Shown one piece after another: positions 1 to 64,000 of a DNA stretch of 64,000 nucleotides (positions are counted from its first letter, which is position 1; each line of letters begins with the position of its first letter). Under the pieces are notes generated by a model. The model searched no databases, was not told the DNA's origin, and was given only the letters and a program-made list of their open reading frames with translations. Where the stretch lies: sequence record NC_019401.1, one strand, 5' to 3'. The translations under genes and the position numbers were made by a program.

Positions 1-126
1 TTGTGCACCAGCATTGTCTCTTATAAATGTATCACCTACATTCTGAGTACTAAAATCAATATCAAGTATTGTAGTACTAGGTGGTAATATATTTCCGTAT
101 TTTATCATCTTTACAAATGGTAACAT
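1..126 (-). CDS. MLPF-family putative virion protein, partial (runs off window), paralog of 1804..2436
   Basis: Not in ORF track. Minus strand reads MLPFVKMIKYGNILPPSTTILDIDFSTQNVGDTFIRDNAGAQ; shares LDIDFSTQxVGDT with 1804..2436. Confidence 0.8.
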   Translation of the reverse strand, partial: MLPFVKMIKYGNILPPSTTILDIDFSTQNVGDTFIRDNAGAQ

Positions 127-204
127 ATAATTTCCCTATAATGGATATAAAGTACTTAAACTATAATCCAAAGTCTATATATCAATATCTTTAATTAATA
201 TAAG

Positions 205-213
205 GTATTTACC
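205..213 (-). promoter_or_regulatory. putative late promoter GTAAATAC
   Basis: Same motif upstream of all three MLPF genes; resembles T4 late TATAAATA. Confidence 0.4.
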
Positions 214-300
214 TCATAAATGCATAAATCACAACTGTTAAGTGCACTTAAAACTTAAACATTCCTAGTACTCATAGCACTCATAGTACTACTAAAATAA

Positions 301-1458
301 TTATATCGATAATGGTAATGTAATTGGTTTGAACCTATAACTGTTAGAACCTATACCCGGTGTATGTGTTCCAATAGCCCCCGCTACGTATATCATATTA
401 TCTGTACCTAATATGTATGAATTCGACGAATTTATAAACCATCCATCATTGTATATCGTCTCATCGTGACTGAATTCCGGCAATAATACCTTATCATGTA
501 ATGTCGGTACGTTGTACGAGCTTGTGCTACCTGTACCAATCTTCCCTTGTGTATTATCACCCCAATACTTAAATTCTCCAGTACTGTTATAATAAGCCAC
601 TGCACTGTTATATGCAGAATATATATAATCTGGATTCCCAATAGATGTAACTAATGTCGGTACTGTTACCGTTCCCGCCGTACTACCATTACCATTTTGT
701 CCAGAATTATTAGTGCCCGCTACGTATATCCCATCAATCTTCTTCGTGAAGTAATTATTCGTTCCAACATAAAAATCTAGTACTTCTGTGTTCAAATTTA
801 TAAATGTGCTTCTCGTTACATTCGGATTTAATTGGAATACAGTACTGTTTCCCGATCCAGCTAATGTTCCATCTGTTCGTAAAATGTAAAATGTTCCAGT
901 AGTGTTAAACCTCGCTTTCTGTATAACTGAACCTATATCAGTCCTCAACGCAAATGTACCAAAATTCGTATTACCTAATCCTAATCTTCCATCACCGTTT
1001 GCACCACCAGTATACATAGAACCGTCTTTCATCACTATATTAATATTCTCATACGTAAGCTGTAAGTACTTAATATTATCATAAGTAACTGCACCAAATA
1101 TATTCGTCCTGTCAGTGAATACCATCACACTACTTGCATTTATTCCTAATGCCGTCGCAATCCCTGAACTAAACCATTTGTTATCGTTCGTTATATATAA
1201 CAGTACTCCACCAGGCGACGATATAGAATCACACCAAAAATTCTTTACATTCGTAGCAATCAATGTCCACTGCGTTAATGCAGTACTGCTACCAGTACCA
1301 AACATACCAGAATTGTTAGAACCTATCGCCCATAAATTTCCAGTACTAGTAAGAAATATTGTATTCGATTGATTAAACTTACTCCCCTGTACCTTAATAA
1401 TATGTCCAGGTGCCGGTGCAATATTCCCGTATTGTATTATCCTGCTAAATGGTAACAT
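301..1458 (-). CDS. RCC1-like repeat (beta-propeller) MLPF-family putative virion/fibre protein
   Basis: Repeated G-x-N-x-x-G-[QR]-[LF]-G motifs (GSNNSGMFG, GANGDGRLG, GTNNSGQNG, GDNTQGKIG); MLPFSRIIQYGN start. Confidence 0.75.
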   Translation of the reverse strand: MLPFSRIIQYGNIAPAPGHIIKVQGSKFNQSNTIFLTSTGNLWAIGSNNSGMFGTGSSTALTQWTLIATNVKNFWCDSISSPGGVLLYITNDNKWFSSGIATALGINASSVMVFTDRTNIFGAVTYDNIKYLQLTYENINIVMKDGSMYTGGANGDGRLGLGNTNFGTFALRTDIGSVIQKARFNTTGTFYILRTDGTLAGSGNSTVFQLNPNVTRSTFINLNTEVLDFYVGTNNYFTKKIDGIYVAGTNNSGQNGNGSTAGTVTVPTLVTSIGNPDYIYSAYNSAVAYYNSTGEFKYWGDNTQGKIGTGSTSSYNVPTLHDKVLLPEFSHDETIYNDGWFINSSNSYILGTDNMIYVAGAIGTHTPGIGSNSYRFKPITLPLSI

Positions 1459-1489
1459 TGTATTCCCCTATATCTTTTTTTAATATCTA

Positions 1490-1498
1490 GTATTTACC
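1490..1498 (-). promoter_or_regulatory. putative late promoter GTAAATAC
   Basis: About 35 nt upstream of the 1458 start. Confidence 0.45.
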
Positions 1499-1504
1499 CA
1501 CTAA

Positions 1505-1535
1505 AACAAAAAAAGCCCGACCTAAGTCGAACTAA
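1505..1535 (-). terminator. intrinsic terminator
   Basis: Minus strand AGTTCGAC-TTAG-GTCGGGCT followed by a T run. Confidence 0.75.
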
Positions 1536-1542
1536 TGTCTAA

Positions 1543-1803
1543 TCATGTAATCTTCTTTACTGTTCGATTCAAATCCGTCGCTGATGAACCACCAAAAAAT
1601 TGATATATCACCGTATCAGTTTCATGCAACGCACAATGCTCAGAAGCATACCATATCGTACCTTTTATATTATCAGGTGCTCGCTTAAATTGTTCAAGTT
1701 CTTCATCCCATACAAATACACAGAACCTAATGCAATAACTAAATTAGCTCCACCATTGTATGATAACTGCTGACCATAATTACTCCATGTATTGGTGCTT
1801 ATA
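1543..1803 (-). pseudogene. frameshifted 3' remnant of a kelch-like repeat gene
   Basis: Reads FNISTNTWSNYGQQLSYNGGANLVIALGSVYLYG, then in another frame VWDEELEQFKRAPDNIKGTIWYASEHCALHETDTVIYQFFGGSSATDLNRTVKKIT-stop; no start codon. Confidence 0.45.
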
Positions 1804-2436
1804 TTAAATCCTAATAATCTTGATACTCTTTAATAACCCATTCCAATATGCAGGAGTACCACCAGTATAAGAACCACCTATGCTAAAATTCGTACCAGCA
1901 CCAAATGGACTCAATGTATGCCTCTGCACTAAACCATTAACAGTAGTTGTTATTCCAGTACTATCTACCTTAAATGATACAATATCCCAACCAGTATTCA
2001 CTACCGTACCAAACTGTATAGTCCTGTAAGTACTTCCAGAATCCATAAACATCTGATACACCCCCGCTGATGGATTGTTACTCATATTCATCCCAGGTAT
2101 TCGTCCAACATTATAATCACCAGTGCAAAATATTTCTCCTACAGGAGCAGAGTTGTTATTAAGTACTAACTGAATCTCAAAACTATGTCCGGGTAATGTT
2201 AAGTACGCATTCATCGGACATATGTACTTAGTATTGTTAAAACGCATTACATTAGATCCTAGTACTTCATTATACTCAACCACCCCAGATGTAGTTCCTG
2301 ATTGTAACGAAAATATACTATGTCCAGTACGGTCTATAATAGAAGTATCTCCAACTGATTGCGTACTAAAATCAATATCAAGTACTACTTCCTTTCCTAT
2401 ATCTCCGTACCGGAATATCCTTGCAAATGGTAACAT
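1804..2436 (-). CDS. LamG/concanavalin A-like domain MLPF-family putative virion protein
   Basis: Beta-rich, with WDIVSF..TTTVNG, FSIGGS and YWNGLLKSIKI typical of LamG folds; MLPFARIFRYGD start. Confidence 0.65.
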   Translation of the reverse strand: MLPFARIFRYGDIGKEVVLDIDFSTQSVGDTSIIDRTGHSIFSLQSGTTSGVVEYNEVLGSNVMRFNNTKYICPMNAYLTLPGHSFEIQLVLNNNSAPVGEIFCTGDYNVGRIPGMNMSNNPSAGVYQMFMDSGSTYRTIQFGTVVNTGWDIVSFKVDSTGITTTVNGLVQRHTLSPFGAGTNFSIGGSYTGGTPAYWNGLLKSIKIIRI

Positions 2437-2466
2437 ATCTAACCCTCTTATTAAAATTATAATATA

Positions 2467-2475
2467 GTATTTACT
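2467..2475 (-). promoter_or_regulatory. putative late promoter GTAAATAC
   Basis: About 35 nt upstream of the 2436 start. Confidence 0.45.
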
Positions 2476-3443
2476 TAGGAGTACTACAATAACCAGTACT
2501 CCAGTACTATAGAAGAACTTATCAACTTCTCAAATATCCCCTCAATATACCCTTAGAACGCTATAGGAAACACTCAGAGAGCATATGTTTGATTCCTGTA
2601 GATAACGCTTTGCGATATCGAAAGGATTCAAACAGCCTAAAATAACGTTTACGATATGCGTCACTCTATATTATAATACTTTAAAATTATATATTATCAC
2701 TATCTTTCTAGTACTATTCAACGTATAAGATAAAAGAATATCAGTACTAATCAGTACTGACAACTATTGTTCAGTACTGTTAACCCCTTCCACTATATCT
2801 GTTCCTGAAGTCGAATGCAAACCGCACAAAAAGTACAGTAACCTTTTTTCAAAAATGATAAGATGAGGTGAGGGAAAATCTGGAAGGTACGTGAAATCAA
2901 ATACCGATCCTAAAAATTTTGGAGTACCTTCGAAAGTTTTTCTGAGATCTCAAAAGTACTCAAACGTAAAAACCAATCAGCAAAATTTCATTTGATACTT
3001 TATTTTTATTGATGATCATTACAGTACTGAACAACGATACAGTACACAGGTGGTAGGTATTATATCAGTACTTGTATATGTCAGAAAATGTAAAGAGCTT
3101 TTAAAATTATAGAATCAGCTTGACGAGAGCGGGTGGATTTAGTATTATGGATTTACACGGTGAGGGGAGGCAATTGAGCCTGGTTCTTACAAGTACTGAC
3201 ATTACTTTTGATGATGTTGGTCATGATACAATTTACCGTATCATTTTCGATCCTCTTTATTGCTTAGGAAATATTGAGTACTAAGTATATTGTAATAATT
3301 GAGTACTTTGTATAGTACTATGTAGTATGCATTTATATTTGACGGTGTACGCCAATATGAATGGATAATGCTAGTACTATACAGTTTTAATTGAGAAAAG
3401 GTACAGATACAGTAACAGTACTGTTACCCTGAATTTTGGGTGT

Positions 3444-3590
3444 ACTATCCCTATCTGCTATCGTTAGATGGATAGACTTCTGGCAGTGTAGATGGATAGA
3501 TGTTTATACGTCTGGACTGCTATCCTTCTGGATGGCTAAACGGCTAGATGGCTACCCATCTGGATGGATAGACGTTTAGACGGCTAAATG
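3444..3590. repeat. cluster of short GATGG[AC]TA repeats with partial inverted CTATC copies
   Basis: GATGGATA at 3467, 3491, 3563; GATGGCTA at 3531, 3547; related GACGGCTA near 3579; CTATC x3 at about 3446-3462. Confidence 0.75.
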
Positions 3591-3770
3591 ATTTTTTCTG
3601 TCAAAATTCCATTAGCTCCCCTTCCGCGACTGGATGGAACCAGGCAGAATCGAAAGTCGTCTTTTCGTGTTGACAGGGATATAATACCACACTGAAAAAC
3701 AATTGCAAGGGATTTTTTGCAGAAAAATAAATTTGACAAGTGATTCAGGATTATAGTACTATATAAGCAA

Positions 3771-3803
3771 GCCAGAGAAATGGCGTCGCCCACAGGGTGC
3801 GGA
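3771..3803 (+). ncRNA. two-hairpin element E1+
   Basis: TTGACA(3733)-18-TACTAT, then GCCA-GAGAAA-TGGC, GTC, GCCCACAGGGTGCGG. Confidence 0.55.
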
Positions 3804-3842
3804 GATCTGCCTATTGATATTTAAATGAATTTTGGATACAAT

Positions 3843-3875
3843 TCCGCACCCTGTGGGTCAAGGAGTTCCGCCTCC
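3843..3875 (-). ncRNA. two-hairpin element E1-
   Basis: Minus strand TTGCAT-17-CATAAT, then GGAG-GCGGAA-CTCC, TTG, ACCCACAGGGTGCGG. Confidence 0.55.
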
Positions 3876-4124
3876 ATGTAAGATATTATGCCAGTACTGC
3901 GATCATAATGCAAGTACTTTTTGTGATTTTCTTTAAAAAAGTTTCCCCTTCTATATACGTATAAAGGAAGCGTTTAGAGCGTGTCAGATCCTGGGGCTTA
4001 CAGTTTTGTACTTTATACTTTATAAAGCCGTGTAAAGCGTCCTATGCGTTCTATGTTTGCGTATGTGTATATAGAGAAGAAAAAGGCTGTTAGAAAGAAT
4101 TTTATAAAAACTTGTATAAAGTAC

Positions 4125-4152
4125 TTGCAAGGTTTTTTCGGTGTGATAGTAT
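4125..4152 (+). promoter_or_regulatory. sigma70 promoter with AGTACT overlapping -35
   Basis: TTGCAA-16-TAGTAT. Confidence 0.55.
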
Positions 4153-4256
4153 TAACCACGTCGAACAGGACAACGCTCTTTAAAAACTTGCTGGTGAATA
4201 CTTAAACATGCCTCCAGGTACTTTGAAAAAAGAATCTGAGAGAATGAAAAAAGTAC

Positions 4257-4284
4257 TTGACGGCAAGATTAGAAAGTGTAGAAT
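4257..4284 (+). promoter_or_regulatory. sigma70 promoter
   Basis: AGTAC-TTGACG-16-TAGAAT with TG extension. Confidence 0.6.
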
Positions 4285-4290
4285 GTTCAA

Positions 4291-4440
4291 TATCGAAAGG
4301 CGGCAAGGTTCGCCGGATGGTAGGAAACGGTGGCGGGGCGATTCAGTACTGCTACAGTGATAAGCGAAAAGAGCTATCACAGCGTTATAAAGGTTAACAT
4401 AACTGTTAACGTCCTATCTGCCGCCCGACGATGCTTTCTG
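4291..4440 (+). ncRNA. candidate structured small RNA
   Basis: Promoter upstream, no ORF; GGCG/CGCC, GGTAGGA/TCCTATC, GTGAT..AGC/GCT..ATCAC and GTTAAC/GTTAAC stems. Confidence 0.4.
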
Positions 4441-4582
4441 TACTGTAAAAGGTACGAAAGAAAAAAGATTCAGAAAGTTATCAAAAAGTACTTGACTGCC
4501 TGAATCGCACGATGTAAGATGTTAAGCAAGCCAGATGGCTAACCCAAAATTCAAAATTTAACTTTTAAGAAGGTATATAATC

Positions 4583-5257
4583 ATGACTACTACTAACACC
4601 ACTAAAGCCGCAAAAGTTACTCTGAACTCTATCGTGTTCGCTGCCGCCCCGGTTCTGCGTGAACTGAAAGAAGGTGAGTCTTACACCAAAACCGAAATGA
4701 AGCAGTTTGAAAAAGAACTGGCCGAACATGTTCGCACTACGTCGCTGGATCTGGCACGTTACATCGTGAACAAAACCGAAAACACCGACCTGATTTCCAA
4801 ACTGCTGGCGGCGACGGTGGAAGCGATTCCTTCTGTGGTTGATGAAGTGCTGAAAGCGAAACAGGAAGAAGAAGCCCGCAAAGCGGAAGAAAAACGCAAA
4901 GCGGAAGAAGAACGTCAGGCCCAGCTCCAGGCCGCCGCTGAAGAACTGGAGAAGAAAAAACAGGATATGCTTAAAGTTCTGACTGATAACGGCGTGGATC
5001 TGGAAGTCGCCAAAGCGATGGTAGCCGCTGGTGCGAAAAACCTGGCTCCGGCTCATGCGGTGAAAAACTCTTACGAACGTGTATCCTGCACTATTGAAGG
5101 CAATCAGTACGATGTTCCGGTGCGTGGCAACATGTCTCAGGCACTGAAAGACCTGGCAGCGAAATACGGTTTCGCCGATGACCGCGAAGGCTTTATCGAA
5201 AAATTCCGCGATGAACCTGCAACGGCGAACGCTGAAGAAAACACCGCCGAAGCGTAA
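4583..5257 (+). CDS. highly expressed early coiled-coil protein, C-terminus resembles H-NS/MvaT DNA-binding domain
   Basis: Strong host-like codon bias; coiled coil; RGNMSQALKDLAAKYG resembles MvaT-type GGNHKTLKEWKAKWG. Confidence 0.75.
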   Translation: MTTTNTTKAAKVTLNSIVFAAAPVLRELKEGESYTKTEMKQFEKELAEHVRTTSLDLARYIVNKTENTDLISKLLAATVEAIPSVVDEVLKAKQEEEARKAEEKRKAEEERQAQLQAAAEELEKKKQDMLKVLTDNGVDLEVAKAMVAAGAKNLAPAHAVKNSYERVSCTIEGNQYDVPVRGNMSQALKDLAAKYGFADDREGFIEKFRDEPATANAEENTAEA

Positions 5258-5404
5258 TACCAAAAGTAATACGGCAAGGGGGCTAGAAAGCCCCCTAAGC
5301 CTTTCTAACAGTACTGTAATACATTTCCTCAAAAGTACTGTTAGAAACGCTTAGAATCAATCCTACAGCGTTTTACGATACATTTTTAATTGAGAGTAAA
5401 CGCT

Positions 5405-5674
5405 ATGGAACTAAAACCACTTTCTGAACTCCGCGATAAAAAAACCATTGTCGCCAGGACAATGATCCACACTTCCCCACGTCAAAAGGTTTTATCTGGC
5501 TATCTGGTTTTTGTGCTGGATGGTAAACTAATACAACGCCGGATCTATGATATGGCTTATAATAGTACTTTTAATAGTGCTATGTATATAGTTTACAAAG
5601 GCGTAAACTATGCCGTAGATCTTGCCTGTAAGACGATTAGCGGGGCTTTCAGTGTTCAAACGTTGAAAGTATAA
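5405..5674 (+). CDS. hypothetical early protein
   Basis: ATG 5405 preferred over TTG 5390; followed by terminator. Confidence 0.7.
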   Translation: MELKPLSELRDKKTIVARTMIHTSPRQKVLSGYLVFVLDGKLIQRRIYDMAYNSTFNSAMYIVYKGVNYAVDLACKTISGAFSVQTLKV

Positions 5675-5685
5675 GCCTACAATCA

Positions 5686-5720
5686 AAAGCCCTTAGAGAA
5701 CGTGCTAAGGGCTTTATATT
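5686..5720 (+). terminator. intrinsic terminator
   Basis: AAAGCCCTTAG/CTAAGGGCTTT stem. Confidence 0.7.
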
Positions 5721-5796
5721 TGATTTTAAAAAATCCTTGCAATAAACTTTCAAACGTGTAGAATTACTTATATCGAAAGAATGTGGAGTAAACAAG

Positions 5797-6189
5797 ATGG
5801 AAAGTAAAGCTAAGTTTGAACAATACAGATTAGTTTTGGATGTACTGATTCAAATGAAAGATTGTATTGACCGCGATGATACTTATACTACAGTACTGGA
5901 TAAGTCATTCAATCTTACCCGATCCCTGGGTATCTGCTGGCATGTATATGTTCACACTCCACCAGCGGAGATCACTGGTATCGGATCGGACTATCTTGAA
6001 CCTGCATTCATTGCGTTAGGGCTTGATCGTGAATATCCGGTTGAAAGCCAGGTTGATACTGATTCGCCGCGAATCCTGCACTTTTCACAGCGTAACCTGT
6101 ACGATCCTGATAACGAGTGCGGAAAGTTACGGATCAAGTTGGTTAATGATTTGATTCAGTACTTTGAAACAGAATTACAAAAGTCTTAA
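5797..6189 (+). CDS. hypothetical early protein
   Basis: GGAG RBS and own promoter. Confidence 0.8.
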   Translation: MESKAKFEQYRLVLDVLIQMKDCIDRDDTYTTVLDKSFNLTRSLGICWHVYVHTPPAEITGIGSDYLEPAFIALGLDREYPVESQVDTDSPRILHFSQRNLYDPDNECGKLRIKLVNDLIQYFETELQKS

Positions 6190-6258
6190 AAAGTACTTGT
6201 ATATTAATTTAGAATCTGTATAATACGTAAGTATAGAGAAACAACAGAGATTAAGAAA

Positions 6259-6543
6259 ATGCAAATTACACTTAACGGATTTACTTTTGTTAAGAACGCA
6301 AATGGTACTGATAACATCCAATCAGTACTTAAAAACAAAGACAATAAAGCATTAGGCGGCATTGTCAAAGAAGGTAACAAGATGGCGAAGCTTGAACGTC
6401 TGAAACAATCGCCGGAAACGTTAGATTTCCTTTGTAAAGTACTGGAAGAAACAAATCAAGTTTATTCAGTACAGAAAGCGGCGAAACCACGTAATAAGTA
6501 CAAAGGTAAATTTAATCCCAACATTCATTCAGTTGGTGCATAA
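6259..6543 (+). CDS. hypothetical basic early protein
   Basis: Own promoter at about 6197-6223. Confidence 0.75.
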   Translation: MQITLNGFTFVKNANGTDNIQSVLKNKDNKALGGIVKEGNKMAKLERLKQSPETLDFLCKVLEETNQVYSVQKAAKPRNKYKGKFNPNIHSVGA

Positions 6544-6555
6544 ATCTTTACAAAA

Positions 6556-6591
6556 CGGGGGTTGACATCAGCCCCCGAAAAATGCAATAAT
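6556..6591 (+). promoter_or_regulatory. terminator-promoter fusion cassette A1
   Basis: CGGGGGTTG-ACAT-CAGCCCCCG hairpin containing TTGACA; AATAAT at 6586. Confidence 0.7.
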
Positions 6592-6599
6592 GTTTACAA

Positions 6600-6633
6600 G
6601 CCGGAACAAAGGCGTAGCCCATAGGATGCGGAG
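6600..6633 (+). ncRNA. two-hairpin element E2+
   Basis: GCC-GGAACAAA-GGC, GTA, GCCCATAGGATGCGG. Confidence 0.55.
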
Positions 6634-6671
6634 ATCTATCTATTGTTTTTTATTTTAATTTTAGATAGATC

Positions 6672-6704
6672 TCCGCACCCTATGGGTTAGGACGTTTCGC
6701 CGTC
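6672..6704 (-). ncRNA. two-hairpin element E2-
   Basis: Minus strand TTGACA-17-TATTAT, then GACG-GCGAAA-CGTC, CTA, ACCCATAGGGTGCGG. Confidence 0.55.
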
Positions 6705-6879
6705 TTGATAGTAATAATAGCAGTACTGAAAAGCCTTGTCAAGCAAAAAAATGGGGAACTTTCCTTGCTCCCCTGTAAATGTTTCAAAGGCATATATTAG
6801 ACTACTGCGAAGCGTTGTTAATCGCAGGTAGTACTATAACAGAACGTGGCAGAGATCGCAAATATATTTTGATGCTTAA

Positions 6880-6966
6880 TATACTTTTAAACGTGAAAAG
6901 TACTTGCAAAGAATGATTAAAAGAGTATACTTAACTTATCGAAACAAACGAGAGGATTTAAAAATG
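6880..6966 (+). repeat. promoter-RBS-ATG cassette, copies at 9235-9321, 14429-14515, partial 7213-7303
   Basis: TATACTTTYAAACGWGAAAAGTACTTGCAAAGAAT...TATCGA..AACGA..AGGATTTAAAAATGG repeated ahead of unrelated ORFs. Confidence 0.8.
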
Positions 6967-7236
6967 GCTAGTTACAGTGCGTCAATGATTGTTAAGGATT
7001 TAGCTGGAAAGCCGTGTTTAGCTTGCGGTTCCTTTGGTAACATTGCGATAGATGGTAGATTATCTATTTCCAGGGCGATAGAGATCGCGGAGGAAAGTTT
7101 TAAGAAAGAATCCAAATTTCAAAACAGCGAATACTTGGGATTTGTAATTGAGAAAACTTCTCGATTCGTTGAATATCGTAAACCGAGTATTATCGGTAAT
7201 AAAGAAGTAAAAACTTTTAAAGAACTTGAACGATAA
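6964..7236 (+). CDS. hypothetical early protein
   Basis: Start reassigned to ATG after GAGGA RBS. Confidence 0.75.
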   Translation: MASYSASMIVKDLAGKPCLACGSFGNIAIDGRLSISRAIEIAEESFKKESKFQNSEYLGFVIEKTSRFVEYRKPSIIGNKEVKTFKELER

Positions 7237-7300
7237 TACTTGTAAAGTGGGTAATGGTTTAGTACTGTTACCCTATCGAAACGAACTTGAGGATTTAAAA

Positions 7301-7747
7301 ATGGGAACTCCAGCATGTATCGCAGTAATGAACGATAAGAAAGAAGTTACCTGGACTTATGTTAACTATGACGGGTATTTAAACGGCGTAGGCAGAATGT
7401 TGAACGAGTATTACAACGATCTGATAATGGCTAAAAAATTGATTTCGATGGGTGATATTTCAGTACTGAAAAAGACGATGGATTGCCCGGTCGGTCACTC
7501 ATTCGCTACACCTGCCCCGGATTGCACAGTATTCTATGAGCGTGATCGAGGTGAAGATAATGTAAAACCACGTCACGGCGATTATGCTATGTTCCTGCGT
7601 TGTAATAAGGGGACAATTAGTTATATCTACACGGATGGACAATGGCATATAGTACGAGAAACAAGTAAACGCGGGGCAATTTTAGACCGTCATAAATTGT
7701 TAGTACTTGGCGAAGTGTTATCCGGTTTATATGATTTTTCGCGTTAA
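7301..7747 (+). CDS. conserved phage hypothetical protein (YDGY / HSF / RDRGE motif family)
   Basis: YVNYDGYLNGVG..GDIS..HSF..YERDRGE pattern; start reassigned after GAGG RBS. Confidence 0.8.
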   Translation: MGTPACIAVMNDKKEVTWTYVNYDGYLNGVGRMLNEYYNDLIMAKKLISMGDISVLKKTMDCPVGHSFATPAPDCTVFYERDRGEDNVKPRHGDYAMFLRCNKGTISYIYTDGQWHIVRETSKRGAILDRHKLLVLGEVLSGLYDFSR

Positions 7748-7760
7748 TTAAATTGCATAT

Positions 7761-7793
7761 AGTACTTGCAAAATTCTGCGAGTACTATATAAT
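7761..7793 (+). promoter_or_regulatory. AGTACT-paired promoter B1
   Basis: AGTACT at 7761 and 7781; TTGCAA..TATAAT. Confidence 0.75.
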
Positions 7794-7823
7794 TACTTAT
7801 ATCTTAAACGGGAGAACAAAGAA

Positions 7824-8279
7824 ATGAAAGCTAACGAATTTGAACAGAAAGTAAGAGAATCCTTTTTGAAGTACTTTCCAAACGGTCATATTCGTTTATC
7901 TAAACTTGCGTTAGGTGGCGGCTTACATATTGCTTGTGGCCTGATTGCAAACGTTAAAGAGATCACCGCCACTATTCGCGAAAATGATCCGTTAAACGTT
8001 TCTATCTTTATTCATGATAACTATGTTTTCAATGATTCAGAAACGGATCTTGATAATGTAGTACTTGAATTTGACAATTCGCATATATCGGTTATTCCTG
8101 ATAATCCGCATATGTACAGCCAATCGCACAAGATCGCCGCACGTAAAATTAACGCTGCACCAGAAAAAGCACTGCAAAACCTGGATAAGTATTTTAAACG
8201 TGTTAAAGATGTTGTATCCGAGCAAGCGGCATTAAATCGGATTATCAAACAAGATACAATTGATCCGAAATATCTGTAA
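7824..8279 (+). CDS. hypothetical early protein
   Basis: GGAG RBS, promoter B1. Confidence 0.8.
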   Translation: MKANEFEQKVRESFLKYFPNGHIRLSKLALGGGLHIACGLIANVKEITATIRENDPLNVSIFIHDNYVFNDSETDLDNVVLEFDNSHISVIPDNPHMYSQSHKIAARKINAAPEKALQNLDKYFKRVKDVVSEQAALNRIIKQDTIDPKYL

Positions 8280-8290
8280 AGTTATTAATC

Positions 8291-8326
8291 AAAGTACTTG
8301 CAAAATGAATGCGAGTACTTTATAAT
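8291..8326 (+). promoter_or_regulatory. AGTACT-paired promoter B2
   Basis: AAAGTACTTGCA-7-TGCGAGTACTTT inverted repeat, then TATAAT. Confidence 0.8.
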
Positions 8327-8356
8327 TAACTTATATTAAGTAAGAGAGAAAACAAA

Positions 8357-8779
8357 ATGAAATTAGATGTAAGAGGTTATTCTGAAGGTGGCTACTGTTT
8401 CCTGTACGATGGTAAGCCGGTTTCCATTCATGAAGCAATGGTCGCGAACGGCGGGAAGTTTTCAAAGCGTACTACTAACGCCTTGAACCGTAGAAATCTG
8501 CCTAGTGTTGAATGGCTAAAAGTGTTTGAAAAAGATGTAGCCACGTTACATACTGGCTTAGATGCTCCTGGTGCCCGTAAAGTACTGAGGGATCATTATA
8601 ACATCGATGTACTTAAACGTGACTATTATCATTTGTCAAGTTCAGAAGTATACGATCTTAAAACTGTATACAAAATGTGCAAATATAAAGTAACAGTTAA
8701 AGAACCTGCACACTCTGAGATGTACTACTTTTTCCAGTACTTGTCAAGGAAAGATGTGCATCCACTCGAAAAGAATTAA
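8357..8779 (+). CDS. hypothetical early protein
   Basis: Promoter B2, GAGAG RBS. Confidence 0.8.
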   Translation: MKLDVRGYSEGGYCFLYDGKPVSIHEAMVANGGKFSKRTTNALNRRNLPSVEWLKVFEKDVATLHTGLDAPGARKVLRDHYNIDVLKRDYYHLSSSEVYDLKTVYKMCKYKVTVKEPAHSEMYYFFQYLSRKDVHPLEKN

Positions 8780-8784
8780 TTAAA

Positions 8785-8821
8785 GAAAGGGGTTGACTTC
8801 GGTTAGCCCCTTCTGTATACT
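8785..8821 (+). promoter_or_regulatory. terminator-promoter fusion cassette A2
   Basis: GGGGTTGAC-TTCG-GTTAGCCCC; TTGACT-17-TATACT. Confidence 0.75.
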
Positions 8822-8830
8822 GTATTCATT

Positions 8831-8862
8831 GGCAGATAAAGCCGCAAGCCCATAGGGTGCAT
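8831..8862 (+). ncRNA. two-hairpin element E3
   Basis: GGC-AGATAAA-GCC, GCAA, GCCCATAGGGTGC. Confidence 0.55.
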
Positions 8863-8942
8863 AATTGTATCTATAATATTAAGAATAAAAAAAAGATAAA
8901 ATAATCCTTGCAATCAAACGATGAATAGATTAATATGTAGTT

Positions 8943-9228
8943 CTCGACACGCAATAACGCGATAACCTAAAAGAAGGAAAGCAGATATTCTATCAGGCTC
9001 ATATCCTGATAGCAGTACTAATAACCTGAGACACATAGCACACCGATAAGTCTATGTTAGGATGCATTAGCGAAAGCACATCACTGGATGAATGCATAGT
9101 ACTGGTAGAATATGCGGTATTATCTTTATAAGAGAATATATGAGATAAACTTAATGCGGCCTTAATGGGCGTGGCGTGTATCAAAAGCCACCGTTAAACG
9201 CTCCCTTAATGGGGGCGTTTTTCGTTTT
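8943..9228 (+). ncRNA. candidate 285-nt structured RNA with own promoter and terminator
   Basis: TTGCAA-17-TAATAT at 8908-8936; nested stems; ends in AAACGCTCCC/GGGGGCGTTT terminator; no plus-strand ORF of 60 aa or more. Confidence 0.65.
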
Positions 9229-9318
9229 GGATAATATACTTTTAAACGAGAAAAGTACTTGCAAAGAATGATAAAAGTAGTATACTTATCTATATCGAAA
9301 ACGAAAGAGGATTTAAAA

Positions 9319-9675
9319 ATGGTAGATATGTTCTGGAGTAGTTCGTGCGGCAGAATTGAACTTGAGTTCAAAGATCCTGAGCAGGTATTCACTATGTTTC
9401 ATAGTGGCGATTGTGAGGATTCTGTTAAGGCACAGATTCCGTACTTCCTTCCTCAATTGCAGAACATTGATCGTTCGCGTATTATTTCAGTACTAAATGA
9501 ATATTCTGGTGATTGGACAATTGGGGAGTTATTGGAACTTACACAGGAAGATCTTTACATTAAACTGTTATGGATCGCTGCTGGTGATAAACACGACGAA
9601 ATCAATATGGATGAATTGTGTGAATGGCAGAATGATTTTTTGGCAGAACGTGAACGCGAAAAACACGGCGAATGA
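9319..9675 (+). CDS. conserved phage hypothetical early protein
   Basis: HSGDC..QL..ID..L.EY..W..LLWIAAG pattern; start reassigned after cassette RBS. Confidence 0.8.
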   Translation: MVDMFWSSSCGRIELEFKDPEQVFTMFHSGDCEDSVKAQIPYFLPQLQNIDRSRIISVLNEYSGDWTIGELLELTQEDLYIKLLWIAAGDKHDEINMDELCEWQNDFLAEREREKHGE

Positions 9676-9681
9676 TCATTA

Positions 9682-9716
9682 AAAGTACTTGCAATAACAT
9701 GCGAGTACTTTATAAT
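9682..9716 (+). promoter_or_regulatory. AGTACT-paired promoter B3
   Basis: AAAGTACTTGCA-6-TGCGAGTACTTT, then TATAAT. Confidence 0.8.
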
Positions 9717-9748
9717 GATTGTACTTATTAAGTGAGAGGAAAAACAAA

Positions 9749-10129
9749 ATGAATCCAGTTTATGACGTTCACGCTGATATTGTAACCACGATGGAAAAAG
9801 TTTTTGCTGGTGGTTATGATGCACTCGCTTTTCGTAAAGAGCATGACAGATTACAAAAGCGAATTGATAACCTCAAATTGGTTAGGGATCGTTATGCTAC
9901 CAACACACTACTTACCAGTATGATTGGTAATGTAATGATGAAAAAACTGTGCCTGGCATATGAATTTGAAAAAACTCTGTATTGTACTGCCAATAACGTT
10001 CCGGGTCGTCCCAATACTGATTTTCTTCATTCATTGAATTTGTCAAGTGCTGAATGGGATGCTTTACCACAATATCACGTGTGGATTGCATCGGGTAAAA
10101 TTTACAGTACTGTGCATAAATCCAAATAA
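9749..10129 (+). CDS. hypothetical early protein
   Basis: GAGG RBS; start reassigned. Confidence 0.75.
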   Translation: MNPVYDVHADIVTTMEKVFAGGYDALAFRKEHDRLQKRIDNLKLVRDRYATNTLLTSMIGNVMMKKLCLAYEFEKTLYCTANNVPGRPNTDFLHSLNLSSAEWDALPQYHVWIASGKIYSTVHKSK

Positions 10130-10135
10130 ACAAAT

Positions 10136-10160
10136 AGGGGAACTATATGTTCCCCTTTTT
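10136..10160 (+). terminator. intrinsic terminator
   Basis: AGGGGAAC-TATAT-GTTCCCCT plus T run. Confidence 0.8.
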
Positions 10161-10175
10161 AAGTGAGATATTCAT

Positions 10176-10430
10176 ATGAATATTTTTTACCAAACTAACA
10201 GGTTATGTGTTGTATTTGATTGTGATTCTGATAAAATACAATGCGTAATATACAGGAAAGGAACGGCAGTATATGATAACTGGAAAGTACTACAATCATA
10301 TACAATGCGGCGTAAAGGTTTTAAACGCCTGGATAATCGAACACAGAAAGCGGCCTTGCGACAAATGATCAAGGCAATGCGGAACCGTCAAACAATGGCG
10401 TTAAACGTTGTACTTAACAGTAAGGAATGA
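10176..10430 (+). CDS. hypothetical basic protein
   Basis: ORF with phage-like spacing. Confidence 0.65.
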   Translation: MNIFYQTNRLCVVFDCDSDKIQCVIYRKGTAVYDNWKVLQSYTMRRKGFKRLDNRTQKAALRQMIKAMRNRQTMALNVVLNSKE

Positions 10431-10434
10431 TACA

Positions 10435-10644
10435 ATGGAACCAGAATTTAAGCCAGAACAGAAAGTAATTTTTCGCAGTACTGACAGCGGGCCAGAATAT
10501 CAAAAGCCATATGACGCTGTAGTTAATCGCTTACTTACAAGTGATGAATACGATATTCAGGACGTTGGATATATGTATGAGATCCAATTCTCTGATGGTT
10601 CTACAAAACATGCTTTTGAAGATGAATTGTCGGTACAGCAATAA
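10435..10644 (+). CDS. hypothetical small SH3-like beta protein
   Basis: AAGGA RBS; FKPEQKV..YEIQFSDG..HAFEDEL pattern. Confidence 0.7.
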   Translation: MEPEFKPEQKVIFRSTDSGPEYQKPYDAVVNRLLTSDEYDIQDVGYMYEIQFSDGSTKHAFEDELSVQQ

Positions 10645-10652
10645 TTAAAAAA

Positions 10653-10685
10653 GGGGTTGACATATGTTAGCCCCGTCTGTATACT
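10653..10685 (+). promoter_or_regulatory. terminator-promoter fusion cassette A3
   Basis: GGGGTTGAC-ATAT-GTTAGCCCC; TTGACA-17-TATACT. Confidence 0.75.
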
Positions 10686-10691
10686 GTATTC

Positions 10692-10722
10692 ATTGAAACA
10701 AATTAGCCCACAGGGTGCGGAG
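10692..10722 (+). ncRNA. two-hairpin element E4
   Basis: ATT-GAAACA-AAT, TA, GCCCACAGGGTGCGG. Confidence 0.5.
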
Positions 10723-10933
10723 GTGTATCTATTAAAAAAGTACTGTACATGTATCCAGTACCTATCAAATATAAATTCAAACGAAAAAAGTACTTGCAAT
10801 GGATGATAAAAGGAGTATAATTGTTTACATGGAAGGGCAAGAGGTGAAAGGTAATGAGTCGCAGTACTGAAATAGCTCTGTTTATCTTTGTACTAGTAGC
10901 ACTATCTATTAATTTTAATTGAGAGGATTCAAA

Positions 10934-11167
10934 ATGTCTTTATATGATGTAACTGTAAACAGTACTGGTATTGGTCGTTCTGGTACTACTAAGATGCTGG
11001 CTGTTGCTTTCTTTCCTCATATGAATGAAGCAAGACAAGGTATCAATGAGTGGGTATCAGAGAACTTTGTTGCTCCGGTAACTGTGAGTGTTGAATTAAA
11101 ATCTCACTCAAATATTATCTATCCATCAGAAGTTCAGGGATATGAGCGTATTGTAATTATTGAATAA
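10934..11167 (+). CDS. hypothetical early protein
   Basis: GAGG RBS; start reassigned. Confidence 0.7.
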   Translation: MSLYDVTVNSTGIGRSGTTKMLAVAFFPHMNEARQGINEWVSENFVAPVTVSVELKSHSNIIYPSEVQGYERIVIIE

Positions 11168-11174
11168 TTCATTA

Positions 11175-11211
11175 AAAGTACTTTGACAAAATGGTTAGAG
11201 TACTTTATAAT
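11175..11211 (+). promoter_or_regulatory. AGTACT-paired promoter B4 (identical to B5)
   Basis: AAAGTACTTTGACAAAATGGTTAGAGTACTTTATAAT. Confidence 0.8.
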
Positions 11212-11324
11212 GTAGTTATATTAAAGGCCAGCTTTCTGACAATATCAGTACTGAGCATGATCTAGAAGATCATGAAGGCACAGAATATAAAGGCTAGTGG
11301 TCTATGGATCAGGAGAACTCATAA

Positions 11325-11558
11325 ATGTTTTATATTGCAGAAGTAAAACGTAATGGCGTAGTTGTTGAAAAATCGTTAGTATGTACCAGTAATGAAATTG
11401 CTGGATATTCTTATGCTGAAGATCGTTTTAATACAGTACAAGATAATACTCCAGGTGAATACAACATTACTTTTGATTTTTATCAGCTTGATAATCGTTC
11501 TATTGTTCCGGTTATACAAATGCCGGAAGATATTAAATTTATTGTCCAATTAGATTAA
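11325..11558 (+). CDS. hypothetical early protein
   Basis: AGGAG RBS after a structured leader. Confidence 0.75.
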   Translation: MFYIAEVKRNGVVVEKSLVCTSNEIAGYSYAEDRFNTVQDNTPGEYNITFDFYQLDNRSIVPVIQMPEDIKFIVQLD

Positions 11559-11566
11559 CAACATTA

Positions 11567-11603
11567 AAAGTACTTTGACAAAATGGTTAGAGTACTTTAT
11601 AAT
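11567..11603 (+). promoter_or_regulatory. AGTACT-paired promoter B5
   Basis: TTGACA-17-TATAAT with AGTACT at 11569 and 11591. Confidence 0.8.
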
Positions 11604-11629
11604 GTAGTTATTGAGTAGGAGGAAACAAA

Positions 11630-11740
11630 ATGCAATTTGTTTTCGGTGCAATTAGCGGTATACTGATTTATCTGAATTGGGATGTTATCAGTCCCTGGAT
11701 TGAATCAGTACTGAAATTTACATTAACCTTTTTTAATTGA
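11630..11740 (+). CDS. 36-aa small membrane protein
   Basis: Not in ORF track. AGGAGG RBS; MQFVFGAISGILIYLNWDVISPWIESVLKFTLTFFN. Confidence 0.65.
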   Translation: MQFVFGAISGILIYLNWDVISPWIESVLKFTLTFFN

Positions 11741-11752
11741 GAGAAACAAAAA

Positions 11753-11956
11753 ATGGCACAGAAAGATCGTCGTTATGCAATCAATGCGGAGTTCACTGGT
11801 CACATTTCCGGTAAGAAACGTTTTGTACTGCGTTTTGAAGGTACTCGCGTATCTGATCACGGTTCCCGCTATGAGGCGGAACAGGAGATCGCGAAGTACA
11901 AGAAAGCGGGTACTATCCCTAATGTAAATGGAACACGTGTTGCAGTGGAGGCATAA
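11753..11956 (+). CDS. hypothetical early protein (paralog-like to 15384..15575)
   Basis: FEGT..EA...IAK motif. Confidence 0.75.
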   Translation: MAQKDRRYAINAEFTGHISGKKRFVLRFEGTRVSDHGSRYEAEQEIAKYKKAGTIPNVNGTRVAVEA

Positions 11957-12132: not shown

Positions 12133-12142
12133 AAACATTATC

Positions 12143-12179
12143 AAAAGTACTTGCAAATAGAAAGCGGGTACTTTATAAT
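12143..12179 (+). promoter_or_regulatory. AGTACT-paired promoter B6 (drives RHH gene)
   Basis: AGTACT at 12146 and GGTACT at 12167; TTGCAA-17-TATAAT. Confidence 0.75.
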
Positions 12180-12208
12180 GTACTTATATTAAGCGAGAGA
12201 ATAAAGAA

Positions 12209-12412: not shown

Positions 12413-12422
12413 CTATATTATC

Positions 12423-61806: not shown

Positions 61807-61817
61807 AAGGTAGATAA

Positions 61818-62030
61818 ATGCTGGAAGTAATGAAGTGTATTGCATTAAGTATAGCTGTAATTGGTTTTGGCTTATCAGTACTTGCACCATTATTTCTACA
61901 TTTTAAAACTGAAGTACAGAATTCTTCAAACATAATAAAAGTACTTGTGTTGTGTATTTCAGTAATAGTTCTTGTACTATATTTTACAATTTTATTTTAT
62001 TTTATTTGGATATATAATGGGTTCATTTAA
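61818..62030 (+). CDS. hypothetical membrane protein
   Basis: Two TM segments. Confidence 0.65.
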   Translation: MLEVMKCIALSIAVIGFGLSVLAPLFLHFKTEVQNSSNIIKVLVLCISVIVLVLYFTILFYFIWIYNGFI

Positions 62031-62955
62031 CACAACATGTTCGGTTTCTCGCCTACCTATTGGTATGGGTGATGAAGTAAAGATTTTCTTTCTAATTAAA
62101 AATCCATACAATGATACGCACAAATGCTATATTAATGATAACTGGAATTTATTTGGTCTTCCGCTAGATGCAATCTATGATGATTATGGCAAATATGAAT
62201 TAGTAGAAAATGAAAAAAATATACGTATTTGGGAAACATACGCACGAGAGTTTAAAAAACGTATCGTAGAGCGTGAACAGGGTCCAAACCAATTTCATGA
62301 TTGTCCGGTATCTCGCAGCGACATTACTTTTAGTACTATTCAAGACGCCATTTGGGAAAGTCGTGCTAATCTAGAGCATAAATTTTTGGATGATAATTCT
62401 GTTGATCTGAAAATCGAAATCATGGCTATTCATAAAAAAGTATATGATTCTATTAGTACTGAATTTGATTGTTGGCGTGGTAAAATTGTCCTTGAAGATA
62501 AAATCAAAGAAATACAAAGCGAACACCGCTTCCCATATTATTTGAACTGCACTGAATTTTTGGAATCATTCGATGAAGATGATGAAAAATTATATGATGG
62601 TGATGAATTAACAGAAGAAGGCAATAAACTACTAAGCCTAAAAATCGAATTAGAGTGGACGATTGATGGACTGATAAAAACACCTAGAATATATGAAGAT
62701 GTTAACATTTATATCAATCACAGCATGGGAATCTACAATCTTGTCGAATACACAGTGCCAGAATATGCAGATTTTGCTCCAGAATTTATTCAGAAATATT
62801 TGTTCGAATGTAACATGACCATGTTGAATATTGAGTATTGTCCAGCAATTACATCAGGCCAATCTTACAATTTTATGAAGCAGGTTGCATTTCATGAAAG
62901 TATTGTTGAACTGGCAAAAGAACTACATCAAACACACGACAATTGGGATGATTAA
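62017..62955 (+). CDS. conserved phage hypothetical protein
   Basis: MGSFNTTC.VS.LPI..GD..F.L..LP..A.YDDYG pattern; start reassigned. Confidence 0.8.
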   Translation: MGSFNTTCSVSRLPIGMGDEVKIFFLIKNPYNDTHKCYINDNWNLFGLPLDAIYDDYGKYELVENEKNIRIWETYAREFKKRIVEREQGPNQFHDCPVSRSDITFSTIQDAIWESRANLEHKFLDDNSVDLKIEIMAIHKKVYDSISTEFDCWRGKIVLEDKIKEIQSEHRFPYYLNCTEFLESFDEDDEKLYDGDELTEEGNKLLSLKIELEWTIDGLIKTPRIYEDVNIYINHSMGIYNLVEYTVPEYADFAPEFIQKYLFECNMTMLNIEYCPAITSGQSYNFMKQVAFHESIVELAKELHQTHDNWDD

Positions 62956-62957
62956 AT

Positions 62958-63158
62958 ATGTTAAAATTGATACTAATTATATCCGTTATTGCATACATCA
63001 TTGTGGGATTTTTAACTTATACTGAATATAAAAAGAAGTTTAATTCAGAAGAAAAAATCTCAACCAAAAAAGTTATCTATATAGTCATTCATGGTTTTTT
63101 ATATGTATTGATTGGATTACTAATTGCAGTACTAGGATATTTGATTTTAACTATGTGA
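62958..63158 (+). CDS. hypothetical membrane protein
   Basis: Two TM segments. Confidence 0.65.
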   Translation: MLKLILIISVIAYIIVGFLTYTEYKKKFNSEEKISTKKVIYIVIHGFLYVLIGLLIAVLGYLILTM

Positions 63159-63165
63159 GGAAATT

Positions 63166-63612
63166 ATGGCTGGCAAAGGATTCGTCGGCCTTTCCCTTGA
63201 TAAAGAACAGGGAAAGGAAATACAAAAAATATTTAAACTAGCAGGGATCGACTGCTTGACTCCATCAAAATTTCATGTTACAGTGATGTACGATGAAAGT
63301 GAACCTGAAATAGAACTACTTTCTAATGATAAGACTTATAAAGCGAAAATCACTGGAGTAGAGCGTTTAGGTAAACCAGGTGGTGAGTGGGAAGCAATTG
63401 CTCTTTTACTTGATTCACCAGAAATTGAGAAGCGGCATAAAGAGTTGCAAAATGCAGGGTTCAAGCACAAGCATCCTAGTTTTAAATGCCATATGAGTAT
63501 CGTATATAAACCAAAAGATACTGATGAAGATTTAATTGAGTTGATTTATAAATTGGGCGTTCTACCAGAAGAATTAATCTTTGGTGATGAACATTTAGGC
63601 ACAACTGTTTAA
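63166..63612 (+). CDS. acb1: Acb1-like (T4 gp57B) 2H phosphoesterase, putative anti-CBASS nuclease
   Basis: HVTVMY and HMSIVY 2H motifs; LLLDS..EKRH...GFKH pattern as in T4 57B. Confidence 0.82.
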   Translation: MAGKGFVGLSLDKEQGKEIQKIFKLAGIDCLTPSKFHVTVMYDESEPEIELLSNDKTYKAKITGVERLGKPGGEWEAIALLLDSPEIEKRHKELQNAGFKHKHPSFKCHMSIVYKPKDTDEDLIELIYKLGVLPEELIFGDEHLGTTV

Positions 63613-63624
63613 TTGGTATAAAAA

Positions 63625-63861
63625 ATGAAAAACGACAAAGACTTAACCAAAAATGAAAAACGGCTTTATAGTGGTTCTTGGGTTGATGAGCAAGAAAACG
63701 CTAAAAAAAATGTGGTATGTACTCGTTGTTTTTCAACATACTTTCTCCAATCAGCACCGAGGACTGTACCCGGTACTGATGGATATTATACAAAGGAGCC
63801 TCAATGTCCGAATTGTGGTTGCCGACTATATTTTACGCATTTAACAGGGAAACATGAATGA
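63625..63861 (+). CDS. Zn-ribbon protein
   Basis: CTRC...CPNC. Confidence 0.7.
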   Translation: MKNDKDLTKNEKRLYSGSWVDEQENAKKNVVCTRCFSTYFLQSAPRTVPGTDGYYTKEPQCPNCGCRLYFTHLTGKHE

Positions 63862-64000
63862 ACCTAAATGGTTTTTTATCTAATAATGGGATTCCACGAC
63901 TAATTTTTTGTACTGGTGCTGGACTTTCAAAAGAATCTGGTATTCAGACTTTCCGTGATGCGGCTGGTGAAGGTCTATGGGATGATGTAAGTATTGATGA
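63858..64000 (+). CDS. Sir2/CobB-family NAD-dependent deacylase, partial
   Basis: Not in ORF track. MNLNGFLSNNGIPRLIFCTGAGLSKESGIQTFRDAAGEGLW. Confidence 0.9.
   Translation, partial: MNLNGFLSNNGIPRLIFCTGAGLSKESGIQTFRDAAGEGLWDDVSID

Follow-up and report, generated by a model that had tools for sequence, protein, structure and literature searches.

The six-base palindrome AGTACT saturates the genome of Cronobacter phage vB_CsaM_GAP32 (JN882285 / NC_019401; 358,663 bp; genus Mimasvirus), where no hexamer is commoner: it is found 1,011 times, against 121 expected. The window analysed here consists of bases 1-64,000 of this genome and holds 290 dispersed copies. The word is kept by selection acting on the DNA, is shared by related jumbo phages infecting diverse hosts, and occupies fixed positions in a family of early promoters. 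It is proposed, with a rough probability of 0.45, that AGTACT is the site of a phage-encoded, two-fold-symmetric reader of duplex DNA, which would tag the phage DNA evenly and gate its earliest promoters.

Abundance of AGTACT against null models

An earlier note, made from the letters of the window alone, had described AGTACT as more than 10-fold enriched, and the excess is stronger than stated there. Base composition predicts 21.4 copies in the window, and 100 dinucleotide-preserving shuffles yielded 17.3 ± 3.9, with a maximum of 28. AGTACT ranks first among all 4,096 hexamers of the window, and the enrichment survives an order-2 Markov model, which expects 44 copies. The hand counts of that note were also accurate: the ~30 copies given for the first 3.5 kb are 33 in bases 1-3,500, the ~17 given for 40.4-43.7 kb are 17, and the gene at 4583..5257 indeed contains 0.

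Open reading frames (ORFs) were taken from our own map of the whole genome and not from the GenBank table (548 ATG-started ORFs of at least 40 aa, selected by greedy choice). In the window, 206 copies lie in ORFs and 84 outside, at densities of 3.9/kb and 8.0/kb, respectively. As had been noticed from the letters, intergenic DNA and all three frames are concerned, with 82 AGT-ACT, 77 xAG-TAC-Txx, and 47 xxA-GTA-CTx in the window, and 409, 298, and 153 in the genome. Genome-wide, ~85% of the copies are internal to ORFs, and the non-coding DNA harbors 148 against 13 expected, an 11-fold excess. Shuffling synonymous codons within each gene, which preserves every protein and the codon usage of each gene, leaves 55 ± 6 copies of the 206 observed in the ORFs of the window, and 223 ± 13 of the 860 observed in the coding sequences of the genome. 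When codon order is shuffled instead, the values are 23 ± 5 and 127 ± 11. Together with the non-coding enrichment, these shuffles rule out a codon or amino-acid artefact, in agreement with the initial claim that amino-acid bias is no explanation.

A general effect of the GTAC core is likewise ruled out, since TGTACA occurs at expectation and GGTACC and CGTACG are absent from the entire genome. The remaining 15 NGTACN hexamers are far from equally frequent with AGTACT, numbering 0-47 copies each in the window. Nor is AGTACT carried by a longer dispersed repeat, its copies being solitary in unrelated contexts. This is exemplified by a mostly non-coding stretch near the probable physical left end (2437..4330), in which 20 solitary AGTACT are embedded in otherwise unrelated sequence and are therefore not parts of a longer repeat.

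Selection, conservation, and flanks

Selection maintains AGTACT at the level of the DNA. Of all Ser-Thr dipeptides, 59% are written with the codons AGT-ACT, against 15% expected from codon usage, and the dipeptide is itself over-used (689 vs 463 expected; Thr-Ser, 449), so that the word has shaped even the protein sequence. In alignments of the window with its relatives, AGTACT sites are retained more often than hexamers at large: 71% vs 40% in Pectobacterium phage CBB, 55% vs 23% in XbC2, 52% vs 22% in BF, and 58% vs 21% in Yen9-04. Positional conservation between phages amounts to 2-2.5 times that of the average hexamer. In each of these comparisons, synonymous third positions within AGTACT are better conserved than those of identical codons elsewhere; with CBB, the values are 0.95 in the motif and 0.68 outside for GTA, and 0.95 and 0.75 for ACT. 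Each lineage also has private sites in similar number, so that the sites turn over while their density stays constant. AGTACT displays three properties of HIP-type palindromes: an excess over composition, Markov, and codon-preserving expectations, presence in all frames and in non-coding DNA, and conservation above a codon-matched background.

The sequences flanking the hexamer are mirror-symmetric. C or A is preferred before it and G or T after it, with G disfavoured at -1, resulting in a weak extended consensus M-AGTACT-K. This preference is identical in coding and non-coding DNA. Such symmetry points to recognition of duplex DNA, over ~8 bp, by a reader with two-fold symmetry.

Distribution among phages and their hosts

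AGTACT enrichment is a conserved trait of the ~350-kb jumbo phage clade comprising Mimas-, Eneladus-, Alcyoneus-, and Asteriusvirus, and phage XaC1; it is present in every clade relative sampled. In single 50-kb samples, for which ~15-17 copies are expected, XaC1 has 312, CBB 266, BF 246, pEa_SNUABM_12 244, Yen9-04 215, and XbC2 214, and phiKp_21 has 140 in 46.8 kb. Two regions were sampled in RaK2, with 119 copies at 1-50 kb and 147 at 240-290 kb, and in 121Q, with 76 at 1-50 kb and 162 at 150-200 kb. No enrichment is observed in the nearest outgroup, PA5oct (3 copies vs 17 expected), nor in T4 (12 vs 17), and an rV5-like coliphage has none at all (0 vs 17). The earlier note had spoken of a phage-specific recurring DNA signal. 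The shuffles bear out a signal at the DNA level, which runs against the avoidance of other palindromes in the same genome, but it does not belong to a single phage, five jumbo lineages sharing it.

A 50-kb sample of Escherichia coli K-12 contains three AGTACT, and the phage density is ~50-100 times that of this host DNA. The hosts of the enriched phages belong to Cronobacter, Pectobacterium, Serratia, Erwinia, Yersinia, Klebsiella, Escherichia, and Xanthomonas. As they span Enterobacterales and Xanthomonas, a reader encoded by the phages would be more likely than one supplied by the host.

A genome purged of other palindromes

The 358 kb of GAP32 are devoid of 27 of the 64 palindromic hexamers, including CTTAAG (121 copies expected), and of the tetramer GCGC (353 expected). 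The enriched relatives all display the same purge, with no GCGC and 23-30 palindromic hexamers missing per 50 kb, and it is not seen in PA5oct or T4. Very strong pressure thus bears on restriction-type palindromes in this genome, and AGTACT is the only, and extreme, exception to it; it does run opposite to the usual palindrome depletion in phages, as had been remarked at the outset. The missing sites may account for earlier reports of digestion-resistant DNA in these phages, and may explain, with no need for modification, why RaK2 DNA was reported to resist many restriction enzymes.

The E. coli Chi octamer GCTGGTGG is also over-represented in GAP32. The plus strand of the genome carries 14 copies, against 1.5 expected from composition and 6.3 from an order-3 Markov model, and the minus strand eight against 0.9; among 168 octamers of the same composition it ranks first. 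Seven plus-strand copies cluster in one orientation at 9.8-23.3 kb, in the terminal early region (9806, 13954, 15750, 17117, 20611, 22000, and 23257), and two others are located at 39525 and 42088. The suggestion that AGTACT is itself a Chi-like recombination mark finds no support: such a mark is an asymmetric word with strand bias, AGTACT is its own reverse complement and has no orientation, and genuine Chi is separately enriched and oriented.

Two-box early promoters

Bases 617-8,250 of CBB align with bases 3,397-14,503 of the window and fall within the annotated 22,456-bp terminal repeat of CBB, which identifies the left part of the window as a terminal early-gene region. Nine promoters with two AGTACT boxes are found there, all on the plus strand, which is the gene strand: 7761..7793 (AGTACT-TGCAA(-35)-N-AGTACT-A-TATAAT), 8293..8326, 9684..9716, 11177..11211 (AGTACT-TTGACA-N10-AGTACT-T-TATAAT), 11569..11603, 12426..12459, 14719..14753, 15324..15357, and 19837..19870, the last with a degenerate -35. 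They share a common layout, namely an A-tract, AGTACT, the -35 element, a spacer ending in a second AGTACT, one base, and TATAAT. The -35 is either TTGACA or TGCAA, the latter sharing the last T of the box. The spacer between -35 and -10 is of 17 bp, and the boxes, one abutting the -35 and the other lying in the spacer and abutting the -10, are 20-22 bp apart, or about two helical turns. Most are positioned ~30 bp upstream of an ORF of our ATG-only map. The nine elements exhibit a sigma70-type organisation, with a -35, a 17-bp spacer, TATAAT, an upstream A-tract, and a location 5' of an ORF on the same strand. Two of them coincide with promoters annotated in GenBank: 11177..11211 contains the sigma70 promoter 11183-11211, and 11569..11603 contains the promoter 11575-11603.

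The same architecture is found in CBB (14 promoters), BF (11), Yen9-04 (7), and XbC2 (4), as well as in XaC1, RaK2, and 121Q, always on the gene strand. The promoters tabulated in the CBB paper are of another class, which lacks AGTACT boxes. A scan of 2.9 million viral contigs of IMG/VR retrieved the two-box pattern in 12 contigs only: GAP32, CBB, BF, Yen9-04, 121Q, five uncultivated genomes of 355-371 kb, and two fragments. Fragments aside, all carriers in IMG/VR are ~350-378-kb genomes. Taken together, the IMG/VR two-box loci have 5.4 AGTACT/kb and no GCGC in 148 kb.

In the nine window promoters and in those of the seven relatives, sites with dyad symmetry thus overlap core promoter elements, as operators of repressors do. 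Dimers occupying the two boxes would cover the positions contacted by sigma region 4 or by the C-terminal domain of the alpha subunit on one side, and the spacer and -10 contacts on the other, a layout resembling that of an operator.

Coverage of the genome

The density of AGTACT is highest in the left arm (1..30000), which is homologous to the 22.5-kb direct terminal repeat of CBB and its early region. It reaches 6-8 sites/kb in these first ~30 kb, and 10/kb in their non-coding DNA, and then falls to ~2.4/kb. Spacing is accordingly of one site per 130-180 bp in the terminal, first-expressed region and of ~1 per 355 bp genome-wide, and the largest AGTACT-free gap in 358 kb is of 2.5 kb. Past the window, from 64 kb onwards, the spread of sites is significantly more even than chance would give, the variance/mean being 0.76 for bins of 1 kb (P=0.001) and 0.72 for bins of 2 kb (P=0.005), with 15 empty 1-kb bins against 26 expected. 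By gene class, densities are 5.5 sites/kb in the early terminal region, ~2.5 in the bulk of the genome, 1.7 in major virion genes, and 1.4 in mobile HNH-type genes, chance expectation being 0.34.

Neither helical periodicity nor clustering of the sites is seen, apart from a small excess at 20-22 bp due to the two-box promoters. A metagene profile relative to gene starts and stops is flat, and AGTACT density is not correlated with GC content (r=0.05).

A proposed reader of AGTACT

Hyper-abundance, symmetric flanks, even coverage, and operator-like placement in promoters together favour a reader that binds the word. It would most likely be a phage-encoded homodimeric DNA-binding protein reading M-AGTACT-K on duplex DNA. 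AGTACT would have accumulated genome-wide by positive selection, so that the phage DNA would be tagged far above the density of host DNA. Early transcription would be gated by occupancy of the promoter boxes; in the simplest case, accumulation of the reader would shut it off. We infer that such a reader exists, that the phage encodes it, that it binds AGTACT instead of modifying it, and that its binding has an effect. Among the suggestions of the earlier note, a binding site for a genome-organising protein provides the best fit to the flanks, the coverage, and the promoter placement, but no such protein was recognised among the candidates examined.

Several observations weigh against this proposal. 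The exact hexamer is ~8-fold enriched and its one-mismatch variants only 1-3-fold. Transcription factors usually have degenerate sites, unlike AGTACT, and so sharp a preference is more often a mark of restriction or modification enzymes. Some 1,000 sites would demand an abundant protein. The two-box promoters account for 18 of the 290 window sites, and a role in promoters cannot, therefore, explain the bulk of them; operators of a repressor are confined to regulatory regions and come with a cognate regulator, and most AGTACT lie in ORFs. The direction of any effect on early transcription is pure inference, shut-off being only its simplest form. Ten left-arm proteins conserved in RaK2, 121Q, and/or XaC1 have no recognisable DNA-binding domain. 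GAP32_030, considered as a reader, is not a ribbon-helix-helix protein, its AlphaFold2 model has a mean predicted local distance difference test score (pLDDT) of 73, and no Foldseek match was obtained at E <= 0.001. GAP32_067, considered as a nuclease or reader, is modelled (pLDDT 86.5) as a MORN/Rhs-like beta-hairpin repeat with helices. Neither of the two models shows a DNA-binding or nuclease fold.

The search for a reader covered further proteins. No DNA-binding domain was detected in ten early or virion proteins, and no regulator among the conserved left-arm proteins examined. GAP32_031 (16051-16293) displays a ParE-like toxin domain (PF24732, E=1e-11). Its upstream neighbour GAP32_030 (the pair spans 15637-16293) is conserved in the clade; its N terminus bears an invariant F-x-T-R-x-x-A-R motif, and its C-terminal segment is basic. 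The searchable literature, out of whose reach lies the original GAP32 paper (Virology 2014), contains no mention of an AGTACT signature in these phages.

A broader version of the proposal is rather unlikely. It holds that the clade may tell self from host solely by sequence words, and not by base modification: DNA dense in AGTACT would count as self, and the reader would bind, organise, or protect it and also time the early promoters, and DNA with GCGC and the other purged palindromes would count as host DNA, open to nucleases of the phage or the host. Were it true, a two-word system would have left its imprint on the choice of codons, and even on the use of Ser-Thr, throughout 350 kb.

Alternative explanations

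The best surviving alternative, possible although doubtful, is a DNA modification, by methylation or otherwise, that the phage would encode and direct at AGTACT. The word would then be an epigenetic self-mark, and might work as a promoter switch, for instance between fully modified infecting DNA and newly replicated DNA. The exactness of the hexamer resembles enzyme recognition, and HIP1, the closest known phenomenon, is tied to orphan methyltransferases (PMC4390886, PMC13756078). Since the rV5-like coliphage has purged AGTACT and E. coli DNA is poor in it, restriction in these hosts seems to act against the word, and without protection its 1,011 copies would put the phage at risk. In addition, losses of AGTACT between relatives are mostly C>T or G>A changes at positions 5 and 2, and GAP32 encodes five DNA methyltransferases. 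Three of these, GAP32_140, GAP32_152, and GAP32_519, were rejected as AGTACT modifiers, each being absent from some AGTACT-rich phages. Close copies (>80% identity) of GAP32_140 are restricted to GAP32 and Yersinia phages, close copies of the N4/N6 enzyme GAP32_152 are limited to 18 records, and GAP32_519 is missing in CBB (PMC5259590).

The only methyltransferase families common to all lineages are a small C5 enzyme (GAP32_390, 67-75% identical in Escherichia and Klebsiella jumbo phages) and a Dam-like enzyme of family PF05869 (GAP32_068; 36342..36884, plus strand), which is syntenic with a cytidylyltransferase gene in all lineages sampled. Nothing ties GAP32_068 to AGTACT. Neither family tracks the trait, as homologues of both are also present in the rV5-like phage that has no AGTACT. 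RaK2 is described as having just two methyltransferases and 5-methylcytosine at CpG in its DNA, which reportedly behaves as Dam-, Dcm-, and CpG-methylated and yields only to enzymes that Dam, Dcm, CpG, and EcoKI methylation does not impede, as stated there with data not shown (PMC3622015). AGTACT contains neither CpG nor GATC, the reported or likely targets of the C5 and Dam-like families. A cognate restriction-modification pair encoded side by side is not apparent either, the product of GAP32_067, the conserved gene beside the Dam-like one, having no nuclease fold. A link to methylation is unsupported, and modifiability alone leaves the selection for sites unexplained. The self-marking modification site put forward in the earlier note thus retains some probability, but no methyltransferase was found to track the trait.

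The region around the Dam-like gene shows one further feature. A ~660-bp gap without annotated gene (35143-35804) precedes the trio of GAP32_067, the Dam-like gene, and the cytidylyltransferase gene. A gap of 600-870 bp occupies the same place in RaK2, 121Q, and XaC1; there is no Rfam match.

It is quite unlikely that AGTACT is the action site of a DNA-transaction enzyme, either the gate of a T4-type topoisomerase II, or the site of a nickase seeding clamp loading, late transcription, or recombination-dependent replication. Cleavage as A|GTAC|T would yield the canonical 4-base stagger of topoisomerase II, and the observed coverage, even and free of gaps over a very large genome, is what such a function would require. 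The clade encodes topoisomerase II, a clamp loader, a gp55-like late sigma factor, gp46/47, UvsX, and many HNH endonucleases, and type IIA gate sites commonly have dyad symmetry, with G at +1 and C at +4 (PMC3814380). These sites, however, follow a degenerate ~12-bp consensus, unlike restriction-type words (PMC3814380), and the signal here, although geometrically compatible, consists of one exact hexamer with weak flank preferences. T4 shows no enrichment despite having these enzyme classes as well, and the fixed positions of the boxes in early promoters are left unexplained. A marking of mosaic junctions was rejected as well: the ends of high-scoring segment pairs between GAP32 and CBB are only marginally closer to AGTACT than random positions (median 45 vs 67 bp).

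A mutational or repair drive, akin to very-short-patch repair or biased gene conversion, which would convert near-matches into a functionless AGTACT, is very unlikely. It would also enrich all frames and non-coding DNA and mimic the conservation of sites, and the low density in recently mobile genes, HNH and similar, is what accumulation with residence time would produce. The one-mismatch neighbours show no depletion, their ratios ranging from 0.87 to 3.1, with the exception of the transversion neighbours AGGACT (0.35) and AGTCCT (0.5), and there is no sign of a repair sink, Vsr-like or other, feeding AGTACT. Nor does a drive predict under-dispersion, flank preferences beyond the hexamer, or invariant promoter boxes.

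A host-protein site or an RNA-level signal (AGUACU) is scarcely credible: the 12-bp consensus of the nucleoid-occlusion factor SlmA, GTGAGTACTCAC, does have an AGTACT core, but its flanks are under-represented (six sites with at most 2 flank mismatches vs ~24 expected; GAGTACTC only twice) and the hosts range from Escherichia to Xanthomonas, and although a palindrome is present in messenger RNA whichever strand is transcribed, reverse-complement-symmetric flanks and boxes upstream of the transcription start point to duplex DNA.

Other features of the window

The first conserved gene of the clade, GAP32_005 (4583..5257, plus strand), is devoid of AGTACT and constitutes a local minimum of the signature, its orthologues having 0-2 sites. 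This site-free gene is real but not special, being GC-rich. Its composition is atypical (51% GC vs ~38% around it; GC content at third codon positions 0.52), its product is rich in Ala, Glu, and Lys, and an antisense ORF covers the entire gene. Just downstream, a hairpin with 21-nt arms each ending in AGTACT (5295..5354, plus strand) has the sites as its stem ends, and a similar AGTACT-cornered terminator is located at ~12800-12851.

The first ~3.4 kb of GAP32 do not align with the start of CBB, and two minus-strand genes located there continue the gene block of the right end. The physical left end and the terminal-repeat boundary of GAP32 are probably near 2.5-3.4 kb of the record, with the repeat probably collapsed in the assembly. 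The terminal non-coding DNA also includes an iteron-like array of imperfect ~16-bp repeats (GATGGATAGAC-type units) at 3467-3590, which could be an origin or a packaging signal, and a perfect 15-bp inverted repeat with a 39-nt loop at 3789-3857. For a candidate paralogue array at 24.9-31 kb, BLASTP backs two pairs only, and an Rfam search of the window matched no family.

Significance and comparison with known systems

A single six-base word has reshaped a 350-kb genome at the level of synonymous sites, dipeptides, non-coding DNA, and promoters, in at least five phage lineages and on many hosts, and such a genome-wide constraint implies a strong function. If a dedicated reader exists, it would represent a new kind of phage genome-organising or self-recognition system, and would give access to the control of early transcription and to the survival of jumbo phages with ordinary DNA in the face of nucleases. 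On the practical side, AGTACT density combined with absent GCGC is a clean marker for assigning metagenomic contigs to the clade, and recoding or engineering of these therapeutic-candidate phages should respect AGTACT sites.

The nearest described phenomenon is, by analogy, HIP1 (GCGATCGC) of cyanobacterial genomes. Like AGTACT, it is a short palindrome in many-fold excess that is found in every frame and between genes, is conserved beyond codon-matched controls, is distributed more evenly than random, and has a debated function (PMC5861425, PMC4390886, PMC13756078). HIP1, in contrast, is an octamer of cellular genomes and AGTACT a hexamer of phage genomes. AGTACT further differs in its fixed promoter positions, its coexistence with a purge of 23-30 palindromic hexamers, and the lack of a cognate methyltransferase among those found.

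The restriction-modification systems ScaI and Eco255I recognise AGTACT, and GAP32 avoids other restriction-type palindromes. Restriction targets are normally depleted in phages, however, as in the rV5-like coliphage, and here AGTACT is the most abundant word, with no cognate enzyme found.

Chi, DNA-uptake sequences, and KOPS are also exact oligomers made dense by selection and read by proteins. These words are asymmetric and strand-oriented, whereas AGTACT is palindromic. GATC, the site of Dam, SeqA, and MutH, is a short palindrome occurring every few hundred bases, with few long gaps, clustered in regulatory DNA, where its state gates promoters or origins. Spacing, scarcity of long gaps, and regulatory placement are shared with AGTACT; GATC, however, is a tetramer whose frequency is close to random and whose methyltransferase and readers are known, and AGTACT is ~8-fold enriched.

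The closest functional analogy for a self-tag coupled to early shut-off is provided by TF1 of phage SPO1. This phage protein prefers the hydroxymethyluracil-containing phage DNA, binds early promoters in the terminal redundancy, and turns them down. No TF1- or HU-like protein was identified in GAP32. The difference between the two lies in the nature of the tag, which is a modified base for TF1 and, in GAP32 and its relatives, would be a word written in apparently ordinary DNA.

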